From assembly GCA_002269645.1 (NCBI GenBank), contig NIVC01001831.1, positions 168,920-232,919 on the forward strand: a DNA stretch of 64,000 bases, in the 5' to 3' direction. The DNA comes from Macrostomum lignano (lineage: Eukaryota). Position 1 is the first letter of the stretch; every line of letters starts with the position of its first letter. The position numbers and the translations under genes were made by a program. Below are positions 24,167 through 63,362 of this stretch, piece after piece. The notes beneath the pieces are model-generated. The model was not told the origin of the DNA. It ran no database searches and worked only from the letters and a program-made list of their open reading frames with translations.

Positions 24167-24467
24167 GGCCCTACCAACTTCTCTACTTTCAAATGGAGTC
24201 AATTTGTCTGCAAGTTGACAAGTTGGCGGCAGGCGAAGTGATTGGAATCCTTCTGATAGGCCAATGCAATCGCATACTTTAACTTTGTCTTATTATGTAA
24301 TAGGCTAAATGGGGAAAAAGCTTAAAAAATCTCCCGTCTAGCCTGGAAAAAGCTTGTCTATTGAGCTTTTTCTTATAGACTAGTACGACACCCAACGGCA
24401 GTAGGCTAGATGGGGAAAAGCTTAAAAAATTTCTGTCTAATATCTTGAGGGTTGACTTAGTCTTACT

Positions 24468-31832: not shown

Positions 31833-33411
31833 TCACTCAGCCTTCAGAACTCCAGGCACGGGTTGCTGGGAGCATCCGATGCGGTGCCGCAAATCGAGGG
31901 GCTCCCGGCCTCGCTGGCCTCGACTGGCGGTGGTCTCGCAGCGCCAGGAGGCCCGCAGGCTCAGCCGGATCGGCTGTGCCCGCGCCTGAGCCGCCCGCTG
32001 GGAGGCGCCACCTTCAATGCGGCTACCCAGCCGGGAGCTGCCAGCCTGCAGGCACTGGCGCTCCGACCGCGCGCTCTCCTGACCCGCGCGCTTCCGGCGC
32101 AGCAGGCGCCAGAAGCCGAAGGTGGCGCTGAACGCCTGGCGGAACTGCTTGCTCATGCAGCAGTACAGCACGAAGTTCACCGAGTTGTTCACCAGGGCCA
32201 AGGTGTTGAGCAGCGCTGCGTAGGCACCCATGAAGCACTGGACCGCCGGCAGGCCCAGTTGCTCGTCCTCGAGGATGTTCAGCATGCTGACCGGGATCTC
32301 GTAGACGATGTACAGCACAATGATGACCATTAGGAAGGCGGTGGTGCGCCTGTGGCGCCGGGACCTGCGCTCGTGCCTGGCCGACCCGGGCTTCGGGTTC
32401 GCCAGCGATTCGCGACGGCGCTCGGTGCGGCGCAGACAGCGGATGATGCAGCAGCAGAGCCCCGCCATCAGCAGGCAGGGCAGCGCCTTCTGGGCCAGGC
32501 AGTTGAACAGCCGGATCTTGAAGGCGTGCCGCTGCTCCATCGACACCTGATCAGGCGATTGGGGTCGTCAAGCCCTCAGCTGAGCACAAAGCTACATGTA
32601 TACCCTTTAAATAAGCCCCAGATTGCACTCAGCTGAGCAGCAGATTACACTCAGCTGAGCAATAGATTACACTCAGCTGAGCACCAGATTACACTCAGCT
32701 GAGCACCACATTACACTCAGCTGAGCACCAGATTACACTCAGCTGAGCACCAGATTACACTCAGCTGAGCACCAGAAATTACACTCAGCTGATGGGGATC
32801 CAGGTACCAAAAACAAGTTCACAACGGTACCCACAGCCCCCCCAGCTCACCTGGTAGGCGGTTTCGTTTCCGGCCACGCTGCCTCCTTGCTGCCTCAGCG
32901 GCTCCACCCTCAGATTCGCAGCGTACGGCGCCAGCGCGGCGCAGTTCGCCAGAAAGGCGAGCAGCAGCGCCAGGCGCGCCCTGGCCAGGCCGAACCAGAC
33001 CTTCGTGCGCGGCGCGGCATGGTACTGCAAGTAGAAGAAGCGAAACAAGGCCAGCAGGACTCCGCACCAGAGAGCGAAGGCGTGCATCAGGTACATGACG
33101 ACATTGCAGACAAGCAGCGCCGCCTGCCAGCCGTAGCTGCTGGCCGCCCGCTGGAACTGGGCCTGCAGAACTGCCGCAGCCAGGAAAATGAGCACCTTGC
33201 TGAGGTCGCTGACCGCGATGCCCAGCAGGATGCTGTTGGTCGGCGTGACCATCTTGCGCTGGCTGAACACGGCGATGTTGAAGCAGTTCATCAGCACCGA
33301 CAGCAGCGAGATGCTGCCGATCACCGGGACGCTGACGGCCGCAAAGCTCAGGCTGAGGGAGCTCTCCGGGCAGGTGGGGCCGGTTGAGTTGTCGAGGCCG
33401 ACGCTGGACAT
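31833..33411 (-). CDS. Rhodopsin-class GPCR, myosuppressin/FMRFamide/Srw-like peptide receptor; exons 33411-32851 and 32546-31833
   Basis: Seven hydrophobic segments; N-glycosylation site DNST; MNCFNIAVFSQRKMVTPTNSILLGIAVSD, LALFRF, RRTTAFL, YEIP, NNSVNFVLYCCMSKQFRQAF; phase-0 intron. Confidence 0.9.
32570..32790 (+). repeat. 22-bp minisatellite CAGATTACACTCAGCTGAGCAC in the GPCR intron
   Basis: Tandem array with palindrome CTCAGCTGAG. Confidence 0.9.
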
Positions 33412-44559: not shown

Positions 44560-45540
44560 ACTGCTCAACTCAACTCTGTTCAGCTCAGCTCAACTCAGCT
44601 CAGCTCAACTCAGCTCAGCTCAACTCAACTCAACTCAACTCAACTCAACTCAGGTCAACTCAGCTCAACTCAACTCAACTCAACTCAACTCAACTCAACT
44701 CAGGTCAACTCAGGTCAACTCAGCTCAGCTCAACTCAACTCAACTCAGGTCAACTCAGCTCAGCTCAACTCAACTCAGGTCAACTCAACTCAACTCAGGT
44801 CAACTCAGGTCAACTTAGGTCAACTCAGGTCAACTCAGGTCAACTCAACTCAGCTCAGCTCAACTCAGGTCAACTCAGGTCAACTCAGGTCAACTCAACT
44901 CAGCTCAGCTCAACTCAGCTCAGCTCAACTCAGATCAGCTCAACTCAGCTCAGCTCAACTCAGCTCAGCTCAGCTCAACTCAGGTCAACTCAACTCAACT
45001 CAACTCAGCTCAGCACAGCTCAACTCAGCTCAGCTCAACTCAGCTCAGCTCAGCTCAACTCAGGTCAACTCAGCTCAACTCAGCTCAGCTCAACTCAACT
45101 CAGGTCAACTCAACTCAACTCAGGTCAACTCAGGTCAACTTAGGTCAACTCAGGTCAACTCAGGTCAACTCAACTCAGCTCAGCTCAGCTCAACTCAGCT
45201 CAGCTCAACTCAGCTCAGCTCAACTCAGGTCAACTCAACTCAACTCAGCTCAGCTCAGCTCAACTCAGCTCAGCTCAAGTCAGCTCAACTCAGCTCAGCT
45301 CAGGTCAACTCAGGTCAACTCAGCTCAGCTCAGCTCAACTCAGCTCAGCTCAACTCAGCTCAGCTCAGCTCAACTCAGGTCAACTCAGGTCAACTCAGCT
45401 CAGCTCAGCTCAACTCAGCTCAGCTCAACTCAGCTCAACTCAGCTCAGCTCAGCTCAGCTCAACTCAGGTCAACTCAGGTCAACTCAGGTCAACACAGCT
45501 CAACTCAGGTCAACTCAGGTCAACTCAACTCAGTTCAGCT
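44560..45540 (+). repeat. Pentamer array (CTCAA/CTCAG/GTCAA)n
   Basis: Directly visible. Confidence 0.96.
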
Positions 45541-48051
45541 GCCCGGCCAGCCCAGTCGGCCACCCGGCTAAAGCCGTCCGCCCTCGCGCACTTCGCCCCG
45601 GCCACCGCGGCCGCCAGCCTCAACGCCTCGGCCAGTGACCGGCCAGCGCGCAGGCCGTGCAGGCAGGCAGCTACGAAGCTGTCGCCGGCGCCCAGAGTGT
45701 CCACGACTGGACCGTCGGGCGCCGCGGCCGGCACAGATATGATGTCGCTGCCGTGGCCGCCTCCGCTTCTGACAGCCCCGGCGCAGCCCAGCTCGCCCCA
45801 GGCGCAGATGACGGTGGCGCTGAATGAAGCGGAAATTCCCGGGGGGGGGGGGGTAATTCCGCTTTAGTTTGGGAATATTCTGGGCAATGAGGTTCAATCG
45901 AGCCCTATTCCTAGAAATTCGATCTATAATCGTTTCCTAGAAACTGTCGCTATCATAAAACACGGCTTCCTAGAAAATGGGACTGCATCGAATTTTGTTT
46001 TCCTAGAAAATAAGATAAATTTATCGGGTTATTTTCCTAGAAACTGGAATTTGATCTATTTAATTAAAATGCTAAAGTTCAAGCAACAATTCCATTTCTT
46101 AGAAAATTGGTTCAATCGAATTTACTTTTAATAAATTTCTATTTAAATCAAATCTTTTTTCCATAAAAATGCAGAGAACTGGGAAATTGAAATCTTGCAC
46201 TTCCCAAGGCTACATGTAAATTCCTGCTCACCCAACATCTACTCGCTCCAGAAACAATCGAACCGCGGCCACCTTGTCAGCTGCTCCGTGAAAGCTGGCG
46301 AACTCTTTGGACAGGAAGATGACATCGCAATTCCCGAGCAGAGAGGCTTCGGAGGATGGGAAAAATTCGTTTTTAGATGGAGGAAATGCAAATGAGCATC
46401 ACCTTGAGAGGGAATCCGTGCATGTCGTCAGGGTTAACTTCACTATCATAAAGCTGACACCTGTGTCCCCAAGTGGACACCCTATACTGAAGTGGACACC
46501 CGGTTTTGAAGTGGACACCCTATCCTGAAGTGGACACCCTATCATCAAGTGGAAACCCTATCCTGAAATGGACACCCTATCTTTAAGTGGACACCCTGTC
46601 CTCAAGTGGACACCCTATCCTCAAGTGGACACCCGATCCTGAAGTGGACACCCGATCCTCAAGTGGACACCCGATCCTGAAGTGGACACCCGATCCTGAA
46701 GTGGACACCCTATCCTGAAGTGGACACCCGATCCTGAAGTGGACACCCGATCCTGAAGTGGACACCCGGTTTTGAAGTGGACACCCTATCCTGAAGTGGA
46801 CACCCAATCCTGAAGTGGACACCCGATCCTGAAGTGGACACCCGGTTTTGAAGTGGACACCCTATCCTGAAGTGGACACCCAATCCTGAAGTGGACACCC
46901 GATCCTGAAGTGGACACCCGATACTGAAGTGGACACCCTGTCCTCAAGTGGACACCCGATCCTCAAGTGGACACCCTGTCCTCAAGTGGACACCCGATCC
47001 TCAAGTGGACACCCTGTCCTCAAGTGGACACCCTGTCCTCAAGTAGACACCCGATCCTGAAGTGGACACCCGATCCTGAAGTGGACACCCGATACTGAAG
47101 TGGACACCCTATCCTCAAGTGGACACCCTATCATCAAGTGGACACCCTATCCTCAAGTAGACACCCGATCCTGAAGTGGACACCCGATCCTCAAGTGGAC
47201 ACCCTATCTTCAAGTGGACACCCTATCATCAAGTGGACACCCTATCCTCAAGTGGACACCCTGTCCTCAAGTGGAAACCCTGTCCTCAAGTAGACACCCG
47301 ATCCTGAAGTGGACACCCGATCCTGAAGTGGACACCCGATACTGAAGTGGACACCCTATCCTCAAGTGGACACCCTGTCCTCAAGTGGACACCCTGTCCT
47401 CAAGTAGACACCCGATCCTGAAGTGGACACCCGATCCTGAAGTGGACACCCGATACTGAAGTGGACACCCTATCCTCAAGTGGACACCATATCATCAAGT
47501 GGACACCCTATCCTCAAGTAGACACCCGATCCTGAAGTGGACACCCGATCCTCAAGTGGACACCCTATCTTCAAGTGGACACCCCATCATCAAGTGGACA
47601 CCCTATCCTCAAGTGGACACCCTGTCCTCAAGTGGACACCCGATACTGAAGTGGACACCCGATCCTGAAGTGGACACCCGATACTGAAGTGGACACCCTA
47701 TCTTCAAGTGGACACCCGGTCTTGAAGTGGGTGCGACTTTACAAAGCTGAGCAGACAGACTCACTCAGTTCGGGGCGGCACTTCTCCAGCTCAACGGAGG
47801 TTCGAATCCGCATAGCAACGGAAGCGCTGCTCATGGAGGCTGCGCGCTGGTTCATCGCTCGGATGTGGCTCAGCATGGCGGCAATTTCAGAAACGTTTCG
47901 ACGACCCTGCATGGAATTTTAGCGTGTGCGAGCGTGTCCGGCCTGCGAGTTCAAAGTTCAGTCCGATCTCACCTCGAAGTGAATCCAGCCGACATCCGCA
48001 GCCGCAAAGTCCCGGTCTCGAAGCTGGTCGAAGGAGAACTCGGGAAAATCT
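45525..48051 (-). CDS. KHK: Ketohexokinase (pfkB family), 3' four exons 48051-47973, 47906-47765, 46346-46232, 45819-45525; 5' exons not in window
   Basis: VGWIHFE|GRRN..TSVELEKCRPEL|..CDVIFLSKEFA..|ATVICAWGELG..VVDTLGAGDSF..AGAKC..GF matches KHK (WIHIEGRN, SVEVEKPR, DVVFVSK, VCAWAEEG, VVDTLGAGDTF, AGKKC); in-frame GT-AG joins. Confidence 0.9.
46475..47728 (+). repeat. 19-bp minisatellite AGTGGACACCC(G/T)ATCCT(G/C)A in a KHK intron
   Basis: Tandem array. Confidence 0.95.
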
Positions 48052-48106
48052 CTATGAAGCGAGTAGAAGGCATGAGGGGGCTTCTGGGACAAAATTTTTC
48101 ACCTCC

Positions 48107-48758
48107 TCCATAATCCCATTAAATCCATCCATATTATCCCTGACAGAATCAGAAAAAAAGGGGGGTCGCACCTGCTCCAAAAACTTCGTCCATAATCCCA
48201 TTAAATCCATCCATATTATCCCTGACAGAATCAGAAAAAAAGGGGGTCGCACTCGCTCACAAAACATCCTCCATAATCCCATTAAATCCATCCATATTAT
48301 CCCTGACAGAATCAGAGCATAACAGGTGTCCTACTGTTATGCTCTGAGGGTTTATGCTCTGAGCATAACAGCTCCAAATCCACCCATAACATTTCTAAAA
48401 CAATCAGAAAATAATCTGCATTCTTCTCCCCACATTCAATTCGCAACGTGCTACCAGATCCCTAAGACTTTAAATCATCAGCGCAGGGTCCTTACCCATT
48501 GAAAAAAATTAAATTCTCAATAAAAATGTTTCCAGTTGTCTCTCCAGGTTCCTATTATACTCAGCCTCATCCATTGTACAAATCCAAGTACCGATGCAAA
48601 CTAGAATGCAGCGAGTACATGAGAAAATATTGGCCCGATGTTGATATCAATGCCCCTAATATTAATCTAGCTCTCCAAAGACATTGGTTTCATAAGTATG
48701 GAGTAACCTACGTAAAAGATTACGATAGCTACTATAACTTTGCAGAAATCATTAGGCA
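48107..48758 (+). repeat. Left TIR (visible part), with ~3 tandem ~82-bp subrepeats and a 95-aa ORF
   Basis: Reverse complement of 63363-64000. Confidence 0.95.
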
Positions 48759-48786
48759 GTTGAAGCTTACTAAAAAAACAGACTAA
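48499..48786 (+). CDS. TIR-encoded hypothetical protein (95 aa from TTG; ATG at 48526); frameshifted copy in the right TIR
   Basis: Open frame; the second copy differs partly at synonymous positions. Confidence 0.5.
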   Translation: MKKIKFSIKMFPVVSPGSYYTQPHPLYKSKYRCKLECSEYMRKYWPDVDINAPNINLALQRHWFHKYGVTYVKDYDSYYNFAEIIRQLKLTKKTD

Positions 48787-49520
48787 GTTCATTTATTCAC
48801 AAGTATATTTACATAAAACAGGAGGAAATAAGGAGGAAAGAGCAGACACTGAGTGTGCAGGGCTATCCGGCCGAGAATTTCCTATTATTCGGATCCAGAA
48901 GAATATTGATTTTCCTCCCGCTCATTTCGTGTACAGCAAATCGTATATGGCAATAGCCCCATAATTCTGCCCGCTTGCCAGACTCTAGCAGCCCCGTCCG
49001 TTCCCGTCCATGGCTCCCGTCCCGTCCCTCTCTCCCTCTCTTGCTTGCCAGTGCCTCAATTGTAGCACAATAGAAGCTAGAACGCCCTTGCCTCTTGGAC
49101 TTGGAGTTGTAAACTATAGATTTTCCTCCCGCTCATTTCGTGTACAGCAAATCGTATAGGGCAGAGTTCTTCCAGGGTTAATATAGATTTATACTTACTG
49201 GGTATACGAGAGCGTATTGTGTCTTTAACCGGTTCCACCAGCTGCTGCCACATTCGCCGCCCCAGGGATAACAACGTTACCGTGTCAGTGTCGATCGCGC
49301 GGAAGCTACTGTATCTATTGTATAATACACTGAGAAAAAATTCCTAGAGCCATATCTTAAAGTAGAGCTTAGTATTGAGCAGAGCTCTACCTACTAAAGA
49401 ACTACTGATTCCCGATTCAGTATCCATATACGCGCTAAATATTTTTTTAATCTGCAAGGTAATAATTATTAATATATTTGCTTATACTAGTTCTGCTTTT
49501 TTTCATTTACTTCACCTACA

Positions 49521-50159
49521 ATGTGTTTTAGAATTTCAATGGACATAGCAATGCCTACATTTGAGGATGATTTGGTTGCTCTAGTAAGGAGGATGTGCGA
49601 GAGTGATGACATGAAGCAATCGAAGTATTGGATTGAGGAATTTAACAAAGTTGCGAGGCGATTCAATAAGTGTGTGATTAATCTACCATCTATCACTGGT
49701 AGGGTGGAAGGAATTGACGAACGAAAGAAGTTGGAGCACATCAATGAGGCTGCGAACTTACTCCGTGATTCACTTGCTCGTGTCATTCCACAACCGGCTG
49801 TGGAATTTGTCTCTGGGAGGCATGACATTGCAGATGTTGTGAATGAGCTCAACAAAATTGACAAAATGATAAATGAACTACAAAATCAAGGACTTCAATA
49901 CGGAATAAAGGCTGGAAAAATTCTGATCCGCATGAAGCTCGTACTGTCTGCTGAGGAATATAGAGCGTTTGCCATGAAGCTTCGATTTAAGCCGGTTTGG
50001 GGGAATTTCTTAATTCGGGTGGCAAGACTCAGCAACACTCGCCCTATTCTAAATCGTTGTGGCATCTCGCTGTATCGACTGCGCTCAATAATTAAGTATG
50101 CCGATGAGGCATTGAAGATGCTAGAAGAAGAAGAAGAGGCCAGTGCACTCCTGGGTTAA
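49521..50159 (+). CDS. Polinton accessory helical protein with a DUF3102-like segment
   Basis: 212-aa ORF; YGIKAGKILIRMKLVLSAEEYRAFA..F..W.NFLIRVARL resembles the DUF3102 pattern (by eye). Confidence 0.6.
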   Translation: MCFRISMDIAMPTFEDDLVALVRRMCESDDMKQSKYWIEEFNKVARRFNKCVINLPSITGRVEGIDERKKLEHINEAANLLRDSLARVIPQPAVEFVSGRHDIADVVNELNKIDKMINELQNQGLQYGIKAGKILIRMKLVLSAEEYRAFAMKLRFKPVWGNFLIRVARLSNTRPILNRCGISLYRLRSIIKYADEALKMLEEEEEASALLG

Positions 50160-50219
50160 CTAATCTGCTGTGACTAATGACTCTTGCTGCTATGACTCTT
50201 GCTTTTTCACATAAAAAAC

Positions 50220-50435
50220 TTTTCACACTGAATACTGCAGTATCTGCTGCTTTTCACATTGAATACTTTTCACATTGAATACTGCAGTATCTGCTGCTTT
50301 TCACATTGAATACTTTTCACATTGAATACTGCAGTATCTGCTGCTTTTCACATTGAATACTTTTCACACTGAATACTGCAGTATCTGCTGCTTTTCACAT
50401 TGAATACTTTTCACATTGAATACTGCAGTATCTGC
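50220..50435. repeat. 47-bp composite tandem array with five copies of the palindrome ATACTGCAGTAT
   Basis: TTTTCACATTGAATAC x9 alternating with TGCAGTATCTGCTGC. Confidence 0.93.
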
Positions 50436-50580
50436 GGCACATTGAGTATAGGATAATGGTTGACAAGAAACAGCTGCCATATCCGTTCCGCTCAACACCC
50501 AACCACCACGCGGCAAAATGTCATAAGGAAAATATAGCCGCCTTTACAAGCTTTCTTTTCAACCGCTAGAGCCACTTGAA

Positions 50581-51045
50581 TCATTCTGCTCTCTCAACCC
50601 CCAGCTCTTTCAGCAGTCTTCCAAGTTCTTTACGTGGCGCGTGCAATATAAAGCCCACCTCTCTTCCCAAACACCCACCCTCGGCGTTAATTCCCAACCC
50701 CAATTTTGTCTTACCAAAAATAACAGCTTTAACTAGCTTCCGAGCGATCGATTCCTTCCACCCGCTTGAAGCCCCTATATTGTCTAGTCTCTTAAGCATT
50801 TCTTTGTCCCAGCGATTCTTCTCCTCAGGAAAATCTCTATATTTAACATCGTGCCACATGCAGACAGAGTCTAGCTCGTTCACAGGCTCATGCCCAGGAT
50901 GTGGATTATTGTTTTTATCTAACTGTATTTCAAGTGGATTCAAAGGCCCGCAATATTTATAGCCGGGAAGTGTCCAGCCTTTGTTTGGATGAGGAAGCTT
51001 TTCTATCAGTCCATGTGAATCTATTTTACCACCAGAGCGCTGCAT
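50581..51045 (-). CDS. Parvovirus-type phospholipase A2 domain protein (PLA2X-like)
   Basis: Ca-binding loop LPGYKYCGPLN and catalytic EPVNELDSVCMWHDVKY; C-terminal KTKLGLG; likely start ATG 51045. Confidence 0.88.
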   Translation of the reverse strand: MQRSGGKIDSHGLIEKLPHPNKGWTLPGYKYCGPLNPLEIQLDKNNNPHPGHEPVNELDSVCMWHDVKYRDFPEEKNRWDKEMLKRLDNIGASSGWKESIARKLVKAVIFGKTKLGLGINAEGGCLGREVGFILHAPRKELGRLLKELGVERAE

Positions 51046-51075
51046 TATTTTATTTAAAATTTTCTTTTTAAATAA

Positions 51076-52083
51076 ATGACAGATCAGAAACTTAAAAAAC
51101 TCTACTACAGCGACAAAGGATTCTTTGTAGGCAAAAATGCCGTTAGTAAACTCATGGAGCTGAGTAAGGAACCAAAAGCTACAGTAGAAAAATGGCTCTC
51201 TAAGCAGGCTGTCTTTCAAATCTATTTCCCACCAGTAAAATTTGAAAGGCCCCATTTCAGTATTTATAAACCTAATGAGGCGCACCAAGCAGATCTTCTG
51301 TTTCTCCCCAATGACTCGGGCTACAAGTATGCTCTTACAATTACAGACGTTGCTTCCAGATATAAGGAAGCTCGCCCACTCAAGACGAAGAAGTCAGAAG
51401 CAGTTGCAGCCGCCCTCCAAGATATTTATAAAAACTCACCCCTTAGTTACCCTGAAATCTTTATGACAGACCCTGGTAAAGAATTCATGGGTGCAGTGAA
51501 ATCACTTATGGAAAAGAAAAATACAGAGATTCGCTATGGCAGAACTGAGCTCCACAGAGATCAGGCTTTTGTGGAAAGATTCAATCTAACTCTAGCCAAG
51601 AGGCTATTCACTAAGCAGACAGCTGAAGAGCTGAAACTAAAAAGTGGCCAATACTACACCAAGTGGACAGACCGGCTCCCCACTGTTATAGAACAACTGA
51701 ACAATGAAGTCACACGCATGACTGGATTGAAACCGTCCCATGCAATTAAACAAGACACTGTCGAACTTAAGTCATCTCATAAAACAGACAACAACACGAC
51801 AACCCCACACAACACACACAACACAAAGCACACCTCGAACTACCCTAAGCTTCCAGGAGTTGAATCACCATACATACTGACAAACTCTGAGTTTCTACGC
51901 TTTTTATATCTACCTGGAGAGCTAGAGAAAGACACCAAAAGAAGAGCTACAGATCCATACTTCAGCCTTGATGTACATAAAATAGACAGACATTTTACCT
52001 CCGACTCCGGTGACTATTACTTTTTATCTCAGGCCTTTAACCCTAAATCCCCACACGGTCATTCACTAGAGCTGAACTCCTAG
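51076..52083 (+). CDS. Retroviral-like (rve) DDE integrase of Polinton
   Basis: HQADLLFL..YALTITDVASRY..PLK.K, IFMTDPGKEF, AFVERFNLTL. Confidence 0.95.
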   Translation: MTDQKLKKLYYSDKGFFVGKNAVSKLMELSKEPKATVEKWLSKQAVFQIYFPPVKFERPHFSIYKPNEAHQADLLFLPNDSGYKYALTITDVASRYKEARPLKTKKSEAVAAALQDIYKNSPLSYPEIFMTDPGKEFMGAVKSLMEKKNTEIRYGRTELHRDQAFVERFNLTLAKRLFTKQTAEELKLKSGQYYTKWTDRLPTVIEQLNNEVTRMTGLKPSHAIKQDTVELKSSHKTDNNTTTPHNTHNTKHTSNYPKLPGVESPYILTNSEFLRFLYLPGELEKDTKRRATDPYFSLDVHKIDRHFTSDSGDYYFLSQAFNPKSPHGHSLELNS

Positions 52084-52128
52084 TGATACCAGCTGACACA
52101 GAAATTAATTAAAATATTAAAATAAAAA

Positions 52129-52575
52129 ATGACAAAGATTGAAACCAGAACCATCAATAAACTCAATAAAATCATTGAATCAAAGAAACCAGGTCTTATA
52201 TCAATTAAAGGTATCAAAGTAAAAATCGATCCCACGCAGCAAATAGTTCAGTGTAATGAACAAAGACACAGCATCACAGATGAAAAGTCAGGAGGAATCC
52301 TACCATTAGCAGCTCTTATTCCGATCATTGCAGGCGCTGTAAGTGCCGCAGGTGGTGTAGCTGGAGGTGTAGCAACTGCTGTTAAAGCTGGGAATGATAG
52401 AGCCCACCAGCTAGAATTGCAAAAGATTGCAAGAGACAAAGGTATAACAATTAAGGCAGGAGAGGGCTGCCCTGATCCTGATGATTGTGAGCATGAAAAT
52501 TCTGTAAGCAAGTCTGACATTGTCAAAGCCATCATGACATTGCACAATGCTGGGTTTACAATAATGCGTATGTGA
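52129..52575 (+). CDS. Adenovirus protein X (mu)-like core/membrane-active protein
   Basis: SGGILPLAALIPIIAGAVSAAGGVAGGVATAV resembles adenovirus pX RGGILPLLIPLIAAAIGAVPGIASVA. Confidence 0.7.
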   Translation: MTKIETRTINKLNKIIESKKPGLISIKGIKVKIDPTQQIVQCNEQRHSITDEKSGGILPLAALIPIIAGAVSAAGGVAGGVATAVKAGNDRAHQLELQKIARDKGITIKAGEGCPDPDDCEHENSVSKSDIVKAIMTLHNAGFTIMRM

Positions 52576-52698
52576 TGAGGTTTTAAACCCCACGTTATCC
52601 AGCTTCATAAACCTAACGCTACTTATAGGATGTAGAAACAGTTCAACTTTTCTATCAGGGTGGTCACCCTCAAAATTTTTTTTATATTTTCGAGAAAA

Positions 52699-55600
52699 AT
52701 GCCAAAAGCCAATCCAGCAAGAGATTTAGTCAACAAATATTTTTCGTCTCATTTACCCTACCCTACAACCTTACAAGGCGTCTCATTTCAAGACAAAAGT
52801 AATTCACTAAGAGAAGCATGCAAACAAAAGTTCAACACCGACCCTGGTCACCTGGGAAGCTATGAAAAACAGTTGGAAATCATCAATCAATTAGAATCAA
52901 ACCAGTATGCGCCTATAAAAATTCTGCAAAGGAACACCAAGAGAGGAGTCGCAACTTAGTTAACAAATATGAAACTCTCACTGGTGAAAAAGCAAAGTAC
53001 CCACAAAATAAGCAGGAACAAGAGAAATTAGAGCAATTAATCCATTTAAAAGAGTCGGAGCTTGCCACTGAAGAGATTAATTTTGCACAGACGAAGTTTA
53101 CAGAACATTACATAGAGTACACAATCCCAATAAACGGCACCAACGGTACCACCGCAAACATCTACGACTATAAAGACAGCATCCAATCAGTTGTTGATCA
53201 CACACTCAAAACACGCAAGACTTTTAAACTACAGATATCATTCAAGATTGCGTTTTATATGCCTGCAAAACCCACTGAGCATCTCGAGTATTACATGACA
53301 ACAAAGGCAAAGCCATTCACCCCAACAGACACACTGGATCCTTTCCTTCAAGATGTCAATAAGAAAATTGAAGCGTTTACATCCAGAGGTTCCGGGTGGG
53401 TCGTGGGAGGGATTCAAAGAGCGACTGTCATGGTCATGAAATATGACCCACTTAAAGCCTCCTCTTATATAGAGCTCCCGCATAAGCTAGCCGGTAAAAA
53501 AGCTTGCATAAATGTTAAAAATAAAGACAATTGCTGTGCTCTATGGGCAGTTCTTTCTGCACTTTTTAGTGTACCTCACCACCCCGAAAGAACCTCAAAT
53601 TATCAAAATTATTTCAACTACTATCTCATTGAATGCGAAAAGAAGGGAATCAGGTTTGACAAAGGAGGCCTGGCGATCTCTCAGATCCCAAAGCTAGAAG
53701 AAGTGTTTAATAACAAAATTAGAATCACAGTCTTTGAGTGGAGTGAAAAAACTGAGAAAGTTCAACCGGTCAGATGTAGCAAAGACGTTTTAGATCCGAG
53801 GGGAAAAGGCGGACTGAAGTGGATCTTCTAGTGATTGGTAATTTACTAGAGGAGGCTCACTATGTTTGGATTAAAGATCTTTCAAGACTCATTCACAAGC
53901 AGTTGAATAATCATCACGAGGCTGTTGCCATCTGCCGCTTGTGCCTTAAGCATTACAGTGGACCTGAACGCTTTGAAAAGCTAACAGAGCATGAATTATC
54001 ATGCGAGGATCACCCGACAAACTGCTCTCTTCCTTCAGCTGAAGAGAAGTATCTCCGTTTTAAGAACTATCACAAGATGGAGAAGCTCCCATTTGTTGTA
54101 TATGCTGATTTCGAATGCTCAATCATGCCGGAAACTCAAAAACAAACTCAAACTCAAAAACATGTCCCCAATTCAGTAGCATATGCCTTTATTAATACAA
54201 AAGGACTTGTTGAGTATAATTATTTCTTTGGAGAGCAGTGTGTGGAGCAGTTTATTGCCAGAATGTTAGAGTTGCAAAAAGTGATTAGCACCCTTCAACC
54301 TGTTCCAATAATGATGACTGAGGAGGATGAAAGTAATTTCCTATCAGCAACTCATTGCCACATCTGCAGGAAACATTTAACTTGCACTAATATTAAAAAC
54401 CCCACCGTTAGGGACCACTGCCACTTTACTGGGAAATTTAGAGGTGCAGCGCATAACACCTGTAATCTAAAGCTAAAATCGAACATTCATGATCTAACGA
54501 TATTTTGTCACAACGCAAAGAACTATGACATGCATTTAATAGTTGAAAAAATCGGCATGATTCCAGACATACACCTTGATTGCATCGCAGAGAACAAGGA
54601 GAAGTTTAAGTGTGTTGATATTAAACAGGATAATTCGGGTACAGGTAAAATAAGACTGAAGGATTCATATCAATTTCTAGCTGCCAGTCTAGACGAACTA
54701 AGCAAGAATCTAAAAGATGAACAATGTACATATACAAAGATGTTTGCAAGTAAAATTAACAACACTGATGAATCATTTAAACTCCTGAGAACCAAAGGCT
54801 TCTACCCCTATGAAAATATTACTGGGTATCACGTATTTGAAGAAGGTTTACCACCACAGGAGAAGTTCTTTTCAAAGCTAACAGACTCTGGAATCTCTGA
54901 CAAAGACTATGAGCACGCGAAGCATGTCTATAATTACTTTAATTGTCAAAACTTCTTCCAGTATCACCTGCTTTACCTCTTCACAGATGTGTTTCTGCTG
55001 GCTGATGTGTTTGAAACCTTCAGATGCACCTGGTACACAGCATATGGCCTCGATCCAGCACATTATGTGTCTCTGCCTGCCACTAGCTGGGAATCTTTGC
55101 TTAAAATGAAATGGGATCAAGATCCAGATTGGTACATTGAACTTCTTACAGACATTGACATGTACAATTTTGTCGAATCGTCAAAGCGAGGGGGAATCTC
55201 AATTTGTGTTAACAGGTATGCAAAAGCAAACAATCCCTACATTGAATCTTACAATAAGGAGCAGCCCTCAAACTACATTACTTACTTGGACGCTAATAAT
55301 CTCTACGGGTGGGCGATGAGTCAAGATCTTCCAGTTAGAGATTTTCGATGGCTACCCTCATCAGAATTAAATGGGACTTTTCATTGGCTGCCATTTATGA
55401 GGTTGATGTTTACATTCCACCAGAGCTTCACGACTATTTCTCTGACTTTCCACCCTTCCCAGAGAACATCAAGTGCCCGAAAATAATCGAAACTCCCAAT
55501 GATAATAATGGAACTTGGCACCTGTCAGGAACAGAAAAAGAACATACAGAGAAACTAACACAGAATCTAAACAACAAGACACGTTACAAAATCCATTACA

Positions 55601-56567
55601 AACTGCTTCAGTATTTTATCTCACTTGGTTGCAGGGTCACCAAAGTTCACCGGGCTCTTACATTTACAGAGGAAGCGTGGATGAAACCCTACATTGATAA
55701 GAACACCCAGTTTAGGACCAAAGCAACCAACGACTTTGACAAGAACCTCTTTAAGTTGGCCAACAACTCTGTCTATGGCAAGACTCTTGAGAATGAGCGG
55801 AAAAGAACAAACCTGAAACTTGTTACCTCATCAGAGCCTGATGTTATTCAGGCAAATATGTCAAAGCCAACATTCAAAGAACTCCATATCTTTAATAGCT
55901 ACTTAGGTGTGATCATATTTTACAAAACCAAGGTGACGCTGCGCAAGCCGATCTATACAGGTGTCACTGTTCTCGACGAATCAAAACGTCTGATGTACCA
56001 GTTCTTCTATGGCATGAAGCAGCAGTACAAGGATAAAATGAAACTCTTGTACACTGACACAGACAGTTTTATTATGGACATTCAAACAGAAGACATTTAT
56101 CAGGACATGCTGCAGCAAAAAGATTTGTTTGACTTGTCTGAGTATGATGAATCTTTCAGGACGCAGAATGGCGATCAAGTGTTTGACGCCACTAACAAGA
56201 AAGTGATTGGGAAAATGAAGGACGAGATTGCTGGTGACATAATCACTGAATTCATTGGGTTGAGAGCAAAGTCCTATTTTATAAAATGTGAGTCGTCAGA
56301 CCCAATAAAAAATCAAAGGGAATTCCGAAACGTGTGGTTAGGAAGGAAATTAATGAAGCTGAATACAGAGACGCCTTGAATTGCAACAAAAAGACATCAC
56401 ATGAGTTCTCAAAGCTACAATCTAAAAACCATATTATTCACACAATTCAGCAAAAGAAGATTGGACTGTCAGGTGCAGATAACAAGAGATTCATTTTTGA
56501 TGACAATATCAACAGTCTACCGTTCGGGCATTGGAGGTTAGGTTTAGGAGGTGGATATTGGGTTTAG
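52699..56567 (+). CDS. Protein-primed family B DNA polymerase, split by at least 4 frameshifts (~52940, ~53815, ~55375, ~56310)
   Basis: ExoI YADFEC, ExoII HNAKNYD, ExoIII YLFTDV, EndoVII-like CHIC..RDHCH..RGAAH..CN, motif A YLDANNLYG, motif B KLANNSVYGK, motif C YTDTDS, LRAKSY. Confidence 0.95.
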
Positions 56568-56600
56568 GTTTGAGAGAAAGTTTAATAAACCTCATAAAAA

Positions 56601-57002
56601 ATGACAACAAATAACTTTCTTGAAGATTTGGCTAACGAACTGGAAATCCCAAACTTTAGAGGAATATTTATGAGGGACACTCTGCCTGATTTTCCTCTAA
56701 GAAAGGAATGCGGCATCATGAACTTTGACACCACCGATAAGCCAGGATCTCATTGGGTTTGCTGGGTGATTGATCCCGATCGCAAGCACAAGTGTTATTA
56801 CTTCGATAGCTATGGGACGGCAGTACCAGAAGAGCTAAGAAATTATATGAAGGGAAAAAATAATAAAAAAATTTATCGCTCAGACTTTATTCTCCAAGGT
56901 CTTAGCAGTGATATTTGCGGTGAGCTGTGCATGACTGTTTTGTATGCAATGACCAAAACACGAAAGACCTACAAGGAAATTATTCTTGGCTGTGTTTCAT
57001 AG
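56601..57002 (+). CDS. Adenain-like (C5) cysteine maturation protease
   Basis: FRGIFMRD, GSHWVC (His), YFDSYG (Asp), Q....DICG (Gln/Cys). Confidence 0.93.
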   Translation: MTTNNFLEDLANELEIPNFRGIFMRDTLPDFPLRKECGIMNFDTTDKPGSHWVCWVIDPDRKHKCYYFDSYGTAVPEELRNYMKGKNNKKIYRSDFILQGLSSDICGELCMTVLYAMTKTRKTYKEIILGCVS

Positions 57003-57675
57003 GGGTTCATTGTGCATTTCTCGTCGTCCTTCGTTCTCGTCCTTCTTGCCGACTTTCTTTCCACATAATGTTGAAAAACTTTCTCGAGTTCATTTCTCAG
57101 CTGACTCATGTCATCAGTACCGACCATGTTCAAGTTCATTCGAATTGATTGTTCATAAAGATCCTGAATGGTTTTGAACTCATCCTCTGAAATGAACTTA
57201 TCCTCGATTGCCCTTGAAATGTACCCTATGATTGAAGTGTGCACCCCTTTCTCTTTTACTTGCTTCTCCTGTAGCTGCTTTAGTTTTTTTCGCCTGTTTC
57301 GCGCTAATGCTCCAGTAATTGCTGAAATAAGTCCACATGCAGCACCCACAGAGCCGAGCGGGATTGCGATTGGGGCTGTGATGACTGGCAACGTTGAGAC
57401 AGCTGCAGCAGATCCAGATAGAACAGACACAGATCCTAGAATCATATTGCTGTAGTCGAAAAATTTACAGTGGCTTTCATAGCGCTTAATTTTCTTTGTG
57501 TTGTGGAAAATATTTTTTTCAAGATCATCGCGCATTTTTTGAATCTCCACAGTCGAAACTGTTGAGAGTTACAAGTAATGACGGGGTAGAGTTTTTGTTG
57601 CTCATATTGGGGTGCACTAGGTGCACTAGGTGTTGTGGGAGCGTTCGGATCATAAAGAGAATTTTGAGCATCCAT
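56969..57675 (-). CDS. Polinton transmembrane/coiled-coil protein (gasderminX-type), frameshift near 57550
   Basis: N-terminal PSAP..LYP..QQFRL joins EIQKMRDDLEK..RYE; hydrophobic hairpin LGSVSVLSGSAAAVSTLPVITAPIAIPLGSVGAACGLIS; I.RAIEDK.ISEDEF. Confidence 0.7.
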
Positions 57676-57782
57676 TTTTAGGGAATTTTTTAAAAAAAAT
57701 CGGCAACTAGTTGGTGGTGGTTAGATTTGTTTTACGGTTGATTGCTTCGTCTGCAGTGACGGCAACAGGTCTCTGAATCTGC

Positions 57783-58525
57783 CTATTCATTATCTGTGAG
57801 CTCCATTCTACGCATGATCTCAAACAAGTCGGTTGGATCACTTGTTTCCCTTGTGGTCTGTGGTGCCTCTTCAGCGTCAATGTTTTTGAGATTATGCAAG
57901 CGTTCAAGACGACCGATTCTTCTCACCGATTTCTGCCATTCGGTAAAAACTAAATCTACAAAGACTTTATTTGCAGTAATTCTTACTTTGATTTGATCAT
58001 GCAACGCTGTTGACTGAGTCATGAACTCTTCTAAATTCCTCACTTTACATGTGTTGGTTGCGACGTTTTCTTTAATTCTATCATGCAATGCTGTTGACTG
58101 GTTCATGAACTCTTCTAAATTCCTCACTTTAACTGCGTTTGTGAAAACTCCTTCTTCAAGAATGCGCATCCGCCTATCAATGGAGTTTCTCAGAAGATTA
58201 ATTGTCGATGCTAAATTTGTTCTTAAACCGTTGATTTGCGAGACTATCGAAGTTATTTCTGACCTAAGTTCATTAGTTGCGTTTAACAACGGCACATAAA
58301 GCTTATCACTTTCAAACTTCTGCCTAGCTACTTTAAGCCTGAGATCTTCCATGTTTATCTGTAGCTGGTGCATGGAGCGCTCTAATTGTTTCAGTCTGTT
58401 TTTATTCAGTTTGATCTCTGGGATCTTTTCGTCGCTGTTGATATATCGCCTGTCAAGGATGGATATTGAGCTGATGTAAGAGCGCTGTTGCCAGAAATGG
58501 ATTCACCTGCAAAGTTTATCGACAT
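57783..58525 (-). CDS. Coiled-coil hypothetical protein with an internal duplication; frameshift near 58460
   Basis: 196-aa open frame with KVRNLEEFM(N/T)QSTALHD twice; upstream MSINFAGE start in another frame. Confidence 0.65.
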
Positions 58526-58541
58526 CTTTTAATAGCAAATT

Positions 58542-59342
58542 TTAAATTACAGTTCTTTTTTCTTTGCTGATAATCACAAACTGGTAAGGCTGATTCCACT
58601 TGTCATAGCAAAGATTAACGAATTCCTCTTGTGAAATCTTTCTGCTTGAGTTTTTTGTTGGATTTATGAAATAGGCAGGCGCAATGACCTCATTGTAAAA
58701 TCTTTTTAACCTGTCCTGTGGAATGGTTGGAAACAGGAGAATCAGATTGCAGTTCCCACGAATTGTTTTGTTCGGGAGCTCGAACCAGTTCTGTGCAATG
58801 TAAATTACATTACAATTGTTATGTCGCCCTCTTGTAAAATAGTTTTCTATCTGCTTCTGTGGGCCTGTCATACAATCATCAAAGACGATCAAATGCTTTC
58901 TCCCCTTTTCTAGCTCATCTGGTTGGGGTAGAAGTTTGGTCTTTGGATCAGCCTGTGGATCTCCATAGGTGAACACTTTAATGTTCTGCCATTTTTCATT
59001 GTCTTTGAGGTGCTTTGCATATTCGGCAGCTACAATTTCAGGGTTACTGGGAAGGCTCATTTGGTTATTAAAACATGCAATAATGTCCTCTTTGTTCAGC
59101 TTGTTTTGAAGCCCTGCAATCAGCATTCTATACTCATCTTGATACAGTGTGGGAGAGTAGATGTGCAGAGTGTCATAGTCGATAAATCCAGGTCTAAGAA
59201 GCATGTTAAAGACTCTGAATGTTTTACCTGAACCTGACGAACCAACAACAATGCATCTGAAGTGACTCGGGATTGACTCATGATGAGAAAACTTAATCTG
59301 ATTACGCGTCCAGTGAGGATTGAAGTCGTTTGAAAAGTCCAT
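58542..59342 (-). CDS. A32/FtsK-like genome packaging ATPase
   Basis: Walker A VVGSSGSGKT, Walker B LIVFDD, YFTRGRH, YIAQ, IRGN. Confidence 0.95.
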   Translation of the reverse strand: MDFSNDFNPHWTRNQIKFSHHESIPSHFRCIVVGSSGSGKTFRVFNMLLRPGFIDYDTLHIYSPTLYQDEYRMLIAGLQNKLNKEDIIACFNNQMSLPSNPEIVAAEYAKHLKDNEKWQNIKVFTYGDPQADPKTKLLPQPDELEKGRKHLIVFDDCMTGPQKQIENYFTRGRHNNCNVIYIAQNWFELPNKTIRGNCNLILLFPTIPQDRLKRFYNEVIAPAYFINPTKNSSRKISQEEFVNLCYDKWNQPYQFVIISKEKRTVI

Positions 59343-59384
59343 TTTTTTCTATGATGAAAAAAAAATAATTAAATAATAAATAAT

Positions 59385-59572
59385 TTAGATGTGTCATTTC
59401 GGGACTTAGATGTGTCATTTTGGGACTTAGATGTGTCATTTTGGGACTTAGATGTGTCATTTTGGGACTTAGATGTGTCATTTTGGTACTTAATGTGTCA
59501 TTTTGGGACTTAGATGTGTCATTTTGGGACTTAGATGTGTCATTTTGGGACTTAGATGTGTCATTTTGAGAC
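59385..59572 (+). repeat. 21-bp tandem repeat TTAGATGTGTCATTTTGGGAC, ~9 copies, upstream of the ATPase
   Basis: Directly visible. Confidence 0.95.
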
Positions 59573-59615
59573 TAGTCTTGTACCTTTACATTTCTTGTAC
59601 CCTCGGAAAGTACCT

Positions 59616-60001
59616 TTAGTCAAATTTGAAACCACTTCCTTTTTTAATGCTTGCTCTCATCTTCTCATAGACTGCAGGGTCCACACTGTCTGGTTTGGGG
59701 CCAGCGGGGCCAGCGGGCCAGAGGTTGAATCTCTTGTTTAGGTGTTACAGTATCCTTTATCTTTTTGGCTGCTGTGGCTACACTGCCAGCCGCTTCGGCA
59801 ACGTTCTTGATGTTCTCTTTGTTCTCTCCAATGACCTTAAAAATCTTAGCCCCCTGAGCGATCAAATCGGCAAGGCCATTCCCGGAGCGCTTCTTTTCTT
59901 GGATAGTGGCCTGCAGGGAAAAGTCCAGATCCGCGTTTAATAAGATTAAGTTCCTCTTTGTCATAGTATTTGTCAATGTCTTTTTCGAAAATAAGTGGCA
60001 T
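59616..60001 (-). CDS. Small putative virion core protein, reconstructed across two frameshifts (MPLIFEK..KRGSGLF..KKRSGNGLADLIAQGAKIFK..KKGSGFKFD*)
   Basis: Pieces in ORFs 59846-60106 and 59665-59976 plus a third frame ending at TAA 59616; repeated GxG motifs and an amphipathic helix. Confidence 0.6.
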
Positions 60002-60017
60002 TTTTACTTGAAATAAA

Positions 60018-61154
60018 TTATTTTTTGTTGAACCGCGAAAGCAGAAGCTCTCTCGCCCTTTTATCGATGTATTTTCTCTCAAGCATTTTGTCCAGGATGT
60101 TGACAAATTCTTTTCTATTCTCGTCTTTCATTCCGGTCTTTGCCGCTCCTAGAAGAACCGCTACTCGCTTGTAGATTTCAGCTATTCCTTTTCCAGTTGG
60201 GTGGTTGGTCTTGGGGTTGTGGAGTTGGTTGGGCTTGTGGCTGCTGGGGAGGTGATCCAAAAGACTGCTCACTTTCAGAGATGGAACTGTCATGTGGCGC
60301 CTGTCTTTGTTGAGGTGTGAAAACTCTTTGCTTGATTCTGTTCATTCGATCTGGAGAGTGTTGTTCTAAGTGTTGCCAGTCTGTTGGGTGATCATTTTTA
60401 TATTAGCTACTTGAGTCGGATCTGCATTTTCCAGTTGCCTGAGTACTTGTTCTTCTGTGAAATGTTGCTGCTGTTGTGGCGGTTGCTGTTGTTGCTGTTG
60501 TTGTTGTTGTTGTCTTATGACTTCCTGATCCGGCAAACCAAACCATTGTTTAAAGTATTTGTATTTTCTAAATCTGTTCAAGACAATCCGTTTTCATGTA
60601 AAATTTTCAACACCGTTGTTCTTGAGCATATCTATATCCCTATCGAGAGCAAAGTAACAAGATCTTTGTAATTTTTGAGCTGCTTTTTAGACGTATTCTC
60701 TTAGTTTTAGTCATGTAATCAAGTAAGTTTGAGTGAAGGATTCTTTTAGTTTGCGCCTTTTTGAGAAATTTTCCTTTTCATCAATGTTGTAAATCCACGG
60801 TTCTTTATATTTTTTTCGCCACTATTCCAAAACATATTTCCATCATCCACTACGCGGCCAAAAAGTTATCGTCACTTTTCATCTGACGGTTGTTTGGGTT
60901 CCTGAGCCTGTGGTTTCCTGGTGAAGATGGGATTTTACCCAATGTGTTTTGCAAGTGGCTCTCTTGAATATCATCAACTGCTTCTTCACTGATCGAATTT
61001 CTTCTTCTGTGTATCCGGGTTTATGAAACTCTGTGGCTGCTTGGACAAACTCATTGTAGGATTGTTGCTCCTTATTTATTAGCCCGGTAACTCGTTTCTC
61101 TGCTTGTGCTAGCTTCTCCAATTCAGATATCTGCTGTGTACTTTTTCGCTTCAT
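60018..61154 (-). CDS. Conserved Polinton protein, heavily frameshifted (poly-Q segment; C-terminal TGKGIAEIYKRVAVLLGAAKTG..EFVNILDKML)
   Basis: Same-strand ORF fragments; C-terminal motif resembles the Maverick 'RL.LL.....AGN....E...ILD.L' family (from recall). Confidence 0.55.
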
Positions 61155-61184
61155 TTCTTATTTTATTTTATTTTTAGTTAAAAA

Positions 61185-62467
61185 ATGAACGACCCACTGA
61201 CACCAGTTTTCTACAAAATTAACAAGCCTATTTTGAGTGATGATAGCACAATCAAAGCGACTCAGGTAAGAGTTCCCAGTCAGGAAAATCAGAATGAAAC
61301 TAATCTTGGTCCTGGCCAAACACTGACATTTACATACAATGGATGTTCGTCTTTGGTTAGTGTGCACAGTCTTAAGAGCGGCTTCCATATGACATTTCAA
61401 TTCAAGACAAAGGGTGGTGCGGATGCGGCTCGTGCTAACGTTGACAAGCATGATGCGGATGTGGCTCTGATCAGTAACTTTTGGGCGTACATGTTCAAGG
61501 AGTTTAGTGTATCGAATGGGAGCACTGAGTTGGAGCGAATCGCCAACTTTGGAATTGTCTATGACGCTCATTGTTTGATCGAGAATCCTGATTTTATTCA
61601 GTTGGGAAGTGGTGCGGGTTTTATTGCAGATGAAAAAGAAGGAGACATCAATGACAGTGGCTATAAAAAGAGGAAGAAGAGATACAACTATGCATTGCAA
61701 GGTGGATGATGCTGCTAAAACCCGCTGTATCGGTCTGTTGATGTATTTGTACCACTGAGATTCATGAGTGGATTCTGTAATACATTTAATCGACTGACTA
61801 GTAACTTTAGCTACACCTTTAGGATGACTAGAGATGATCGCAGTAGAGTGTTGTGGACTGGGGCGGATCACACAAGGATGGAGGTGAAGCTAACCGGAAT
61901 CGAGCTGTATTTGGAAGTCATTGAGCCAAAGACTGCACTAAAAGCGGATTATCTTAAGGCAATAGAGAAGGACATTGATGTTGCATACACGGCCTACATG
62001 TGTCGAGATGAGCGAAACGAAACTAGAACAAACATCTGCATTAAAGAGGGATCATGCAGCAATCCAGGTATATTATTATTAACATGAGAAACCCAAATAG
62101 CATTATACGCTACATGCATGGAGACGTGCGGTCCATTCAGCATGAAATCAGTGATAATCTTTACCCTGCACTGCCACAAAATGGAGATTTCAGTCAGAAC
62201 AAGATTAGCAAATTTTACAGCGAGTTGGTCGACTTGGCTGTGAAAGAGAACAATGGAATTGCTATCACTGCTCTTCAATATGGAACTCTATATCCAATGT
62301 TTGGCGCTGATGTGTCTGCCAGACAAATGCCTACTGATAACAGCCCTGTGAATATCGTGACTAACATTGAGAGGACTGTCGCAACACCCGTGGACCTGTA
62401 CATTATCTATGCATTTGAGAGGAAGGTGAAGCTTAACATGATCAACAATTCATCCAGTAAAGTTTAA
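61185..62467 (+). CDS. Major capsid protein (double jelly-roll type), frameshifts near 61705 and 62065
   Basis: Three collinear fragments totalling ~425 aa, beta-rich; N-terminal SDDSTI, YPLRFMSGF, LYPALP..F, YPMFGADVSARQ; located before the penton gene. Confidence 0.8.
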
Positions 62468-62491
62468 ATATTTTTTTTGTGGGTGAAAAAA

Positions 62492-63353: not shown

Positions 63354-63362
63354 AAATCACAA

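Follow-up and report, generated by a model that had tools for sequence, protein, structure and literature searches.

Within the 64-kb stretch of Macrostomum lignano DNA analyzed here (the window), an adintovirus-type Maverick provirus most probably occupies an old phase-2 intron of one of the flatworm's ketohexokinase (KHK) gene copies, its left end lying about 8 nt before the splice acceptor, a reading to which we give a probability of roughly 0.75. The original prediction had placed a virus-like element of about 16 kb at a KHK splice acceptor, and both halves of that claim are borne out below, the first by inverted repeats of 95.8% identity together with Maverick hallmark genes and the second by an intron boundary shared, in position and phase, with sea urchin KHK.

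The element is recognizable from its terminal inverted repeats, its gene content and its base composition, the GC content dropping at 48 kb from ~50% in the flank to ~40% in the element. The window ends ~45 bp before the right terminus, and the full element is predicted to measure ~15.98 kb. The features that delimit it are:

48062-64000, plus strand: Maverick/Polinton (adintovirus-like) element, cut by the window end
48062-48761, plus strand: left terminal inverted repeat, opening with AGTAGAAGG, which contains three AGN triplets
63363-64000, plus strand: right terminal inverted repeat, cut by the window end
48072-48316, plus strand: three ~81-bp subterminal direct repeats of the left arm

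The segment 48107-48761 pairs with 64000-63363 through 611 matches, 27 substitutions and 14 gap events, the arms being ~700 bp long, with 655 bp alignable at the above identity when gaps are disregarded. This pairing is far beyond chance, and the terminal 33-mer occurs once in the window (0 expected). The left arm carries 45 extra terminal bases (48062-48106) that have no partner inside the window; their partner would fall just past base 64000. Among the subterminal repeats the outermost copy is the most diverged (70%), and a mirror-image array is found at 63798-64000. No second copy of the element or of its repeat was found in the window, and exact scans with the subterminal repeat returned 0 matches in viral contigs and 0 in metagenome contigs.

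Between the repeats lie the genes of the element, several of which are best understood through a 10.4-kb ENA metagenome contig (ERZ21818092 NODE_5414, here L002) that is its closest relative of usable length:

50581-51288, minus strand: parvovirus-type phospholipase A2 (PLA2) domain protein (PF08398, E = 8.3e-14; homology covers 50698-51084)
51076-52083, plus strand: retrovirus-like rve integrase, single open frame (PF00665, E = 3.3e-09)
52129-52575, plus strand: adenovirus pX-like core protein, single open frame (PF05829, E = 4.5e-07)
53172-56540, plus strand: protein-primed family B DNA polymerase (pPolB), broken (PF03175, E = 7.1e-11)
56601-57002, plus strand: adenain-like cysteine protease, single open frame (PF00770, E = 1.6e-04)
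58542-59342, minus strand: A32/FtsK-type genome-packaging ATPase, single open frame (PF04665, E = 3.6e-06)
61185-62467, plus strand: double-jelly-roll (DJR) major capsid protein gene, broken (E = 8.9e-92 in two frames when the intact L002 protein of 431 aa is the tblastn query)
62477-63353, plus strand: putative minor capsid (penton-like) gene, broken (matches the whole of the 261-aa L002 protein, E = 2.7e-47, in two frames)

With pPolB, integrase, protease, ATPase, capsid, PLA2 and pX-like genes all present, the identification of the element as a Polinton holds. The integrase scores 37.4 bits against a PF00665 cut-off of 32.6, and the protease 21.9 bits against 21.3 for PF00770; each is 42% identical to its L002 homologue (E = 7.8e-65 and 1.6e-29, respectively). 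The PLA2 gene likewise has a homologue in L002, as does the pX-like gene, whose homologue carries the same Pfam match. The closest relatives of the ATPase, at 62-78% identity, are encoded on ENA metagenome contigs of 1-3 kb. For pPolB there are 2199 relatives at E ≤ 1e-30 (best 3e-107), the full-length ones being 1150-1380 aa, and tblastn with eight of its relatives recovers the gene in 3-4 pieces in three frames. It contains three frame changes, and one in-frame stop that appears in the alignment with one relative only. Its N-terminal part aligns with the N-terminal regions of the full-length relatives; with regard to an OTU domain, this part has no Pfam or PHROG match of its own. The major capsid gene has one frame change and two in-frame stops, and the penton-like gene one frame change, so that three element genes are decayed. 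Neither the capsid nor the penton-like pieces match any Pfam or PHROG family by themselves, and their identity rests on the L002 homologues: the 431-aa capsid protein carries PF21738 (DJR-like_dom, E = 1.4e-12), whereas the penton-like role, in a protein that matches no family, is suggested only by its place beside the capsid gene.

Maverick/Polinton elements were reportedly described by Kapitonov and Jurka in 2006 and by Pritham et al. in 2007, and have been surveyed in vertebrates (PMC8097293). The element in the window shares with them a size of ~16 kb, inverted repeats of several hundred base pairs, pPolB (here broken) and an rve integrase, as well as an adenain-like protease, a packaging ATPase and a DJR capsid gene, the virion module being completed by a minor capsid gene assigned by position only. 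Its putative 5' end resembles the AGT/AG-repeat type, at five of six bases rather than six, and its mutational degradation is that of most genomic copies. It differs in having the three subterminal direct repeats within its inverted repeats and in its host, a free-living flatworm; literature searches found no description of Maverick/Polinton elements in free-living flatworms.

Alpha adintoviruses are characterized by an OTU domain fused to a pfam03175 PolB and by PLA2X, in which PLA2 and a C-terminal pX-like domain form one protein (Starrett et al. 2021, PMC8502044). The window element has in common with them an animal host, a pfam03175-type PolB with a long N-terminal extension, adenain, an rve integrase, an FtsK-type ATPase, a parvovirus-like PLA2 domain and an adenovirus pX-like domain (PMC8502044). 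Unlike in PLA2X, its PLA2 (50581-51288, minus strand) and pX (52129-52575, plus strand) are separate genes, as they also are in L002, and the copy is endogenous and broken rather than a free genome. L002 has homologues of the ATPase (47% identity), capsid, penton-like, pX-like, protease, PLA2 and integrase genes, but its genes are intact, lie mostly on one strand and follow another order. Neither L002 nor L001, the longer relatives, has terminal inverted repeats, and because it lacks such repeats and ends L002 says nothing about the terminus.

On the other side of the left junction the window contains part of a KHK gene, in four minus-strand exons:

47973-48051, minus strand: internal exon with the last base of the Gly-119 codon and residues 120-145 of the M. 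lignano proteins P0001 and P0161, DFPEFSFDQLRDRDFAAADVGWIHFE
47765-47906, minus strand: exon for residues 146-193
46232-46346, minus strand: exon for residues 193-231
45525-45819, minus strand: last coding exon and stop codon, residues 231-328 (97 aa aligned with P0001 at 100% identity)
48052-48053, minus strand: 3' splice-site AG of the element-bearing intron

Joined, the exons encode a 209-aa product corresponding to KHK residues 120-328, without stops or frameshifts. That the gene is a ketohexokinase, as had been proposed, is confirmed by its matches: the product finds human ketohexokinase structures at E = 7e-28, with the next family at 5e-06, and named KHK orthologues at ~1e-28, so its best named match within the PfkB family is KHK. 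It is 97-98.6% identical to M. lignano ketohexokinase-like proteins, two of which, P0001 (97%) and P0161 (three of 209 residues different), are full-length at 328 aa. Like the animal enzymes (human 3b3l and 2hqq; sea urchin P0029) it is a PfkB-family kinase, with ~40% identity over the C-terminal two-thirds, and it has exon boundaries in common with sea urchin P0029; it departs from them in that only residues 120-328 are present in the window, in one of at least three near-identical flatworm copies. The absence of the 5' exons, also noted beforehand, stands: a tblastn search of all 64 kb, the element interior included, finds nothing that matches P0001 residues 1-119. The product of this copy is itself absent from public proteins, where the two full-length siblings are recorded. 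The flatworm thus has at least three near-identical KHK copies, at least two of them full-length besides that of the window. Intact downstream exons do not prove function if the insertion is young.

The start of the exon at 48051 coincides with an intron boundary of long standing. The exon is bordered by ...cgcttcatag/AGATTT on the acceptor side and TTCGAG/gtgaga on the donor side, and its beginning, xx/A GAT TTT CCC GAG, fits a split Gly codon in HDRG/DFPEF of P0161 (HDRG-DLPEF in P0001). In sea urchin KHK the sequence ...HKNK is split as AA/gtgagt ... cag/G ACT CTA CCA GAG, so that position and phase agree with those in the window, and the homologous exon has both the phase-2 start and the ...HFE/gt end of the window exon. 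Elysia KHK is intronless and so uninformative on intron position. Judged by the boundary shared with sea urchin, the exon start at 48051 is a genuine and ancient 3' splice site, and the element therefore lies in an intron rather than in coding sequence.

Directly beside this site, as had been claimed, lies the end of an inverted repeat. AGTAG is present at 48062-48066 (minus strand 48080-48062: CCCCCTCATGCCTTCTACT), preceded by GAAGCG at 48056-48061, and between 48062 and the acceptor AG (48053-48052) there remain:

48054-48061, no strand assigned: eight host intron bases between the acceptor and the likely element end, of which GAAGCG (48056-48061) is the predicted 6-bp target-site duplication

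Mavericks as a rule make a 6-bp target-site duplication and have the end motif 5'-(AGT)2 or (AG)3 (PMC8097293). AGTAGA at 48062 matches the published (AGT)2 at five of six bases; this is only weakly significant, the chance of a five-of-six match to either hexamer in the ambiguous stretch of ~20 nt being ~0.17. We infer that the element ends exactly at 48062. As similarity between the repeats establishes element sequence no further out than ~48072, the true end falls within 48054-48072. The suggestion of a terminus at AGTAG, ~10 nt from the acceptor, is thus right as to the letters and close as to the distance (8 nt), while the exact end is narrowed only to that interval.

We favor a course of events in which the provirus would have been integrated by its own rve integrase into a pre-existing phase-2 KHK intron, with its left end ~8 nt upstream of the 3' splice-site AG. 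On this reading the 6-bp GAAGCG duplicate would follow just beyond the right end, at ~64045, as would the exons that encode residues 1-119, and the intron would now be ~16 kb longer, its branch-point and pyrimidine-tract region being nearly all element sequence. Such an insertion would be an ordinary event, probably neutral or mildly harmful, and the presence of at least two further full-length KHK copies would account for its being tolerated. It is no evidence of a special relation between element and splice site.

Two other accounts of the anatomy were weighed against this reading. Had the element entered coding sequence, the exon would once have extended further 5' and the apparent acceptor would be fortuitous; the frame upstream of 48051 is indeed open for 16 codons, and its ...SLHR-DFPEF superficially resembles ...ILHDRG-DLPEF of P0001, with two residues (LH) coinciding. 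That match, however, needs a two-codon gap in proteins that are otherwise 97-99% identical, the split GG/A codon restores the Gly of HDRG in P0161, and the sea urchin intron falls at exactly the same codon and phase, so that we regard this account as extremely improbable. It is also conceivable, but improbable, that the KHK copy is truncated and dead, the 5' exons not lying beyond the element owing to a deletion or rearrangement at integration or to a misjoining of element copies; in the latter variant only the left junction would belong to the KHK locus, the right one having another origin. The unmatched residues 1-119 and the lack of a public protein for this copy, while two full-length siblings are recorded, would fit such a loss. 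So would the published M. lignano assemblies, which are highly redundant and repeat-rich, with extensive duplicated blocks at ≥95% identity (PMC5730564); they were hard to build owing to the repeats (PMC5730564), and a chimeric join through a repeated 16-kb element is therefore conceivable. The many small indels between the repeat arms also suggest an imperfect long-read consensus. On the other hand, integrase-mediated insertion normally keeps both flanks contiguous, the motif-like element end cleanly adjoins host intron sequence, and the four downstream exons are undamaged. The window, moreover, holds no further copy of the element or its repeat, and 5.8 billion public proteins include no ATPase nearly identical to that of the element (best 78%), which gives no positive sign of a multi-copy family.

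How the insertion affects splicing is a separate matter from where it lies. The acceptor of the 48051 exon has 15 pyrimidines in 20 positions, against 10-15 of 20 at the gene's three other acceptors, and inside the element there is a yTnAy motif whose A precedes the exon start by 22 nt. Element sequence now makes up most of this acceptor context, which equals those of the other acceptors in pyrimidine richness, in agreement with the earlier suggestion that the element end supplies both tract and branch region. It is imaginable, though less likely than not, that the provirus is removed with the intron and that the KHK acceptor now draws its functional branch point and pyrimidine tract from the last ~30 nt of the element's inverted repeat; a virus-derived end would then have been co-opted as the 3' end of a host intron. 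The acceptor may instead have been disabled, with the original branch point and pyrimidine tract displaced by ~16 kb and the mis-spliced copy persisting as others supply the enzyme; this is a serious possibility, if a little short of an even chance, and it bears on the consequence of the insertion and not on its anatomy. Only eight host bases remain upstream of the AG, the element is old enough to have decayed, the gene is redundant, and an intron of >16 kb is unusual for M. lignano, whose mean intron length is 1.1-1.4 kb (PMC5730564). Against a disabled acceptor stand the replacement sequence, with a plausible branch motif at -22 and no worse than the gene's other acceptors, and the open downstream exons, so little changed from P0161. 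Given the redundancy of KHK genes, a neutral and a disruptive insertion are equally plausible. The M. lignano annotation filtered out repeat-overlapping transcripts (PMC5730564), so that a lack of further element copies among annotated proteins would say little about copy number. That this element family prefers acceptor-like targets is very unlikely, the idea resting on a single case.

An intronic Maverick insertion is of an ordinary kind, and either splicing outcome is incremental and unsurprising to specialists. With this locus, the hosts of adintovirus-like Mavericks come to include a free-living flatworm, a model organism for which RNA-seq data, several laboratory lines and assemblies of sister species exist, and in which the left boundary between host and element is well defined. 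If transcripts of this copy are correctly spliced, the locus would illustrate in nature how an acceptor can function behind foreign sequence and with a viral insert of 16 kb in its intron; if splicing is lost, it would show a disruptive insertion being sheltered by gene redundancy.

The Maverick/Polinton element lies directly at a splice acceptor of a ketohexokinase (KHK) gene, an observation that our analysis confirms, and the interpretation placed on it in the original prediction was supported at every point tested within the window. The features on which this rests are listed below, with the exons carrying canonical AG/GT borders and each acceptor scored as the number of pyrimidines in the 20 nt before NAG.

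KHK exons and element genes, with acceptor scores and gene breaks
48051-47973, minus strand: KHK exon, acceptor with 15 pyrimidines
47906-47765, minus strand: KHK exon, acceptor with 10 pyrimidines
46346-46232, minus strand: KHK exon, acceptor with 15 pyrimidines
45819-45525, minus strand: KHK exon, acceptor with 13 pyrimidines
50581-51288, minus strand: parvovirus-type PLA2 protein, single open frame without breaks
52129-52575, plus strand: adenovirus pX-like protein, single open frame without breaks
53172-56540: family B protein-primed polymerase of pfam03175 type, broken relative to full-length relatives (1150-1380 aa) by three frame changes and, in a single alignment, an in-frame stop
61185-62467: major capsid gene, homologous to an intact 431-aa protein of the metagenomic relative L002 (E = 8.9e-92), broken relative to it by one frame change and two in-frame stops
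62477-63353: putative penton-like gene, named from its position only, homologous to the adjacent 261-aa L002 protein and broken relative to it by one frame change
Between the arms: rve integrase, adenain-like protease and A32/FtsK-type packaging ATPase, each a single open frame without breaks

Joined unaltered, the four KHK exons give a 209-codon open reading with a stop at its end, and the proposed identity of the host gene is upheld by the match of this product to human ketohexokinase structures (E = 7e-28, against 5e-06 for the next family, other PfkB sugar kinases) and to named ketohexokinases of brachiopod, bird, mollusc and sea urchin (~1e-28). By a wide margin the top match is the M. 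lignano protein P0001 (UniRef A0A1I8I0I4, 328 aa; 97% identity); P0161 (A0A1I8HQ02), from the same cluster, differs from the window product at 3 of 209 residues. These matches place the window in M. lignano or a very close relative. The gene has at least two full-length copies elsewhere, and the window KHK makes a third, unrecorded one, in agreement with the large-scale duplication known in the M. lignano genome (PMC5730564). It encodes residues 120-328; as predicted, the 5' exons are missing, and tblastn with residues 1-119 of P0001 gave no match on either strand of the 64 kb, element interior included. A chimeric assembly through the element and a rearrangement are, taken jointly, unlikely. 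The KHK intron between 47765 and 46346 is nearly all 19-bp minisatellite (66 copies, 46471-47730), and a 10-bp array of 99 copies starts right at the stop codon (44563-45540); such arrays abound across the whole window.

The exon frame remains open upstream of 48051, into the element, and two residues of that reading (LH) happen to look like upstream KHK protein sequence, as if the element had inserted in coding sequence. As a test of the exon start, we mapped the sea urchin KHK P0029 onto its own genomic locus, L006, where the corresponding exon encodes (K)TLPELDPKDFEKLDLGKYSWIHFE. Its borders read ...CAT AAA AAC AA/gtgagt ... ttttgtcag/G ACT CTA CCA GAG, with TTT GAG/gt downstream, and the window counterpart reads cgcttcatag/A GAT TTT CCC GAG ... 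TTC GAG/gt. Insertion into coding sequence is rejected in view of the sea urchin intron at the same position and phase, and the exon at 48051 has the true splice acceptor claimed for it. The acceptor AG at 48053-48052 is an ancient intron boundary, because intron position, phase (two codon bases before the intron, one after) and exon 3' end are identical in the two species and the split GG/A restores the Gly of HDRG/DFPEF in P0161; the element sits within the intron. L006 also repeats, at 64% identity, part of the exon lying next upstream of this shared intron (4886-4951 versus 5146-5286), and the two copies have the appearance of an alternative exon pair.

Outward of about 48072, repeat similarity no longer vouches for element sequence, and the boundary falls within 48054-48072. 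In vertebrates, Mavericks terminate in 5'-(AGT)2 or 5'-(AG)3 and generate 6-bp duplications (PMC8097293). From 48062 the window reads AGTAGAAGG, three AGN triplets matching 5 of 6 bases of (AGT)2; we estimate the chance of a 5/6 match to either of two hexamers in about 20 positions at ~1 in 6. The predicted AGTAG terminus at 48062 is reasonable but not proven, the best available choice within a boundary fixed only to that interval. Such an end would lie 8 nt from the acceptor AG, with a predicted duplication GAAGCG (48056-48061), and the whole intron before its final 8 bases would then be element. The acceptor does have the anticipated pyrimidine tract (15 of 20) and a candidate branch region, a yTnAy motif inside the element whose A lies 22 nt before the exon start; this context does not forbid splicing. 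The intron would exceed 16 kb, against a mean of 1.1-1.4 kb in M. lignano (PMC5730564), and retained and lost splicing seem about equally probable; the two other full-length copies could cover KHK function. Another intron of this gene spans only 66 nt, and insertion so near an acceptor would be unremarkable if the original intron was short.

GC content drops from ~50% to 40% at about 48.06 kb and stays so up to the window end. The terminal inverted repeat predicted to adjoin the 48051 exon is present: 48107-48761 pairs with 64000-63363 (611 matches, 27 substitutions, 14 gap events), with three subterminal direct repeats of ~81 bp in either arm. Because the left arm has 45 further terminal bases (48062-48106), the right arm should end ~45 bp past the window, for an element of ~15.98 kb. 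No second copy was found within the window, and an exact scan of viral and metagenome collections gave no match to the subterminal repeat; exact-protein look-ups of four window proteins and P0001 were likewise empty. The element also contains tandem arrays at 50204-50435 (47 bp x4.9) and 59385-59573 (21 bp x9), and an 84-bp duplication (57996-58156) within the ORF 57783-58373.

The gene set corresponds to the Maverick/Polinton hallmark set, the 431-aa L002 protein bearing the double-jelly-roll domain PF21738. The nearest animal class is Alpha adintovirus, which combines a pfam03175 PolB with PLA2 and pX (PMC8502044); that class has a fused PLA2X protein (PMC8502044), whereas the window element and L002 (6960-7469 and 2946-3326) keep PLA2 and pX-like in separate genes. 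The closest ATPase relatives (62-78% identity) are on metagenome contigs of 1-3 kb, and the longer relatives L001 and L002 carry no terminal repeats. The polymerase N-terminal part, before the pfam03175 match, gave a weak Endonuclease VII-like match (E = 3.7e-04, below the curated cut-off). Literature searches found no paper describing adintovirus-like Mavericks in Macrostomum.

Elsewhere in the window, further host coding pieces (AMPK beta C-terminal domain, ankyrin-repeat, peroxiredoxin-like, RRM-protein exons, WD40 and a two-exon Srw-like GPCR) occupy 1989-2507, 9731-10414, 12508-13089, 15342-15803, 19198-19614, 28576-29352 and 31833-33411. An AT-rich stretch at ~20600-26800 (GC 30-37% versus ~50% around it; no long ORFs) is compatible with a large intron, with intergenic DNA or with a non-coding repeat.

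The gene breaks, with arms ~4% diverged, point to an endogenous copy of some age. Some of the counted frameshifts may be long-read consensus errors, since small indels between the arms are unusually frequent (of the 14 gap events, 10 involve one base and 5 fall in homopolymer runs) and their ratio to the 27 substitutions is suggestive of long-read indel errors in the assembly. Errors of this sort do not account for the in-frame stops. Partly decayed and adintovirus-like, this Maverick occupies an intron of a redundant metabolic gene and is of a kind already known.
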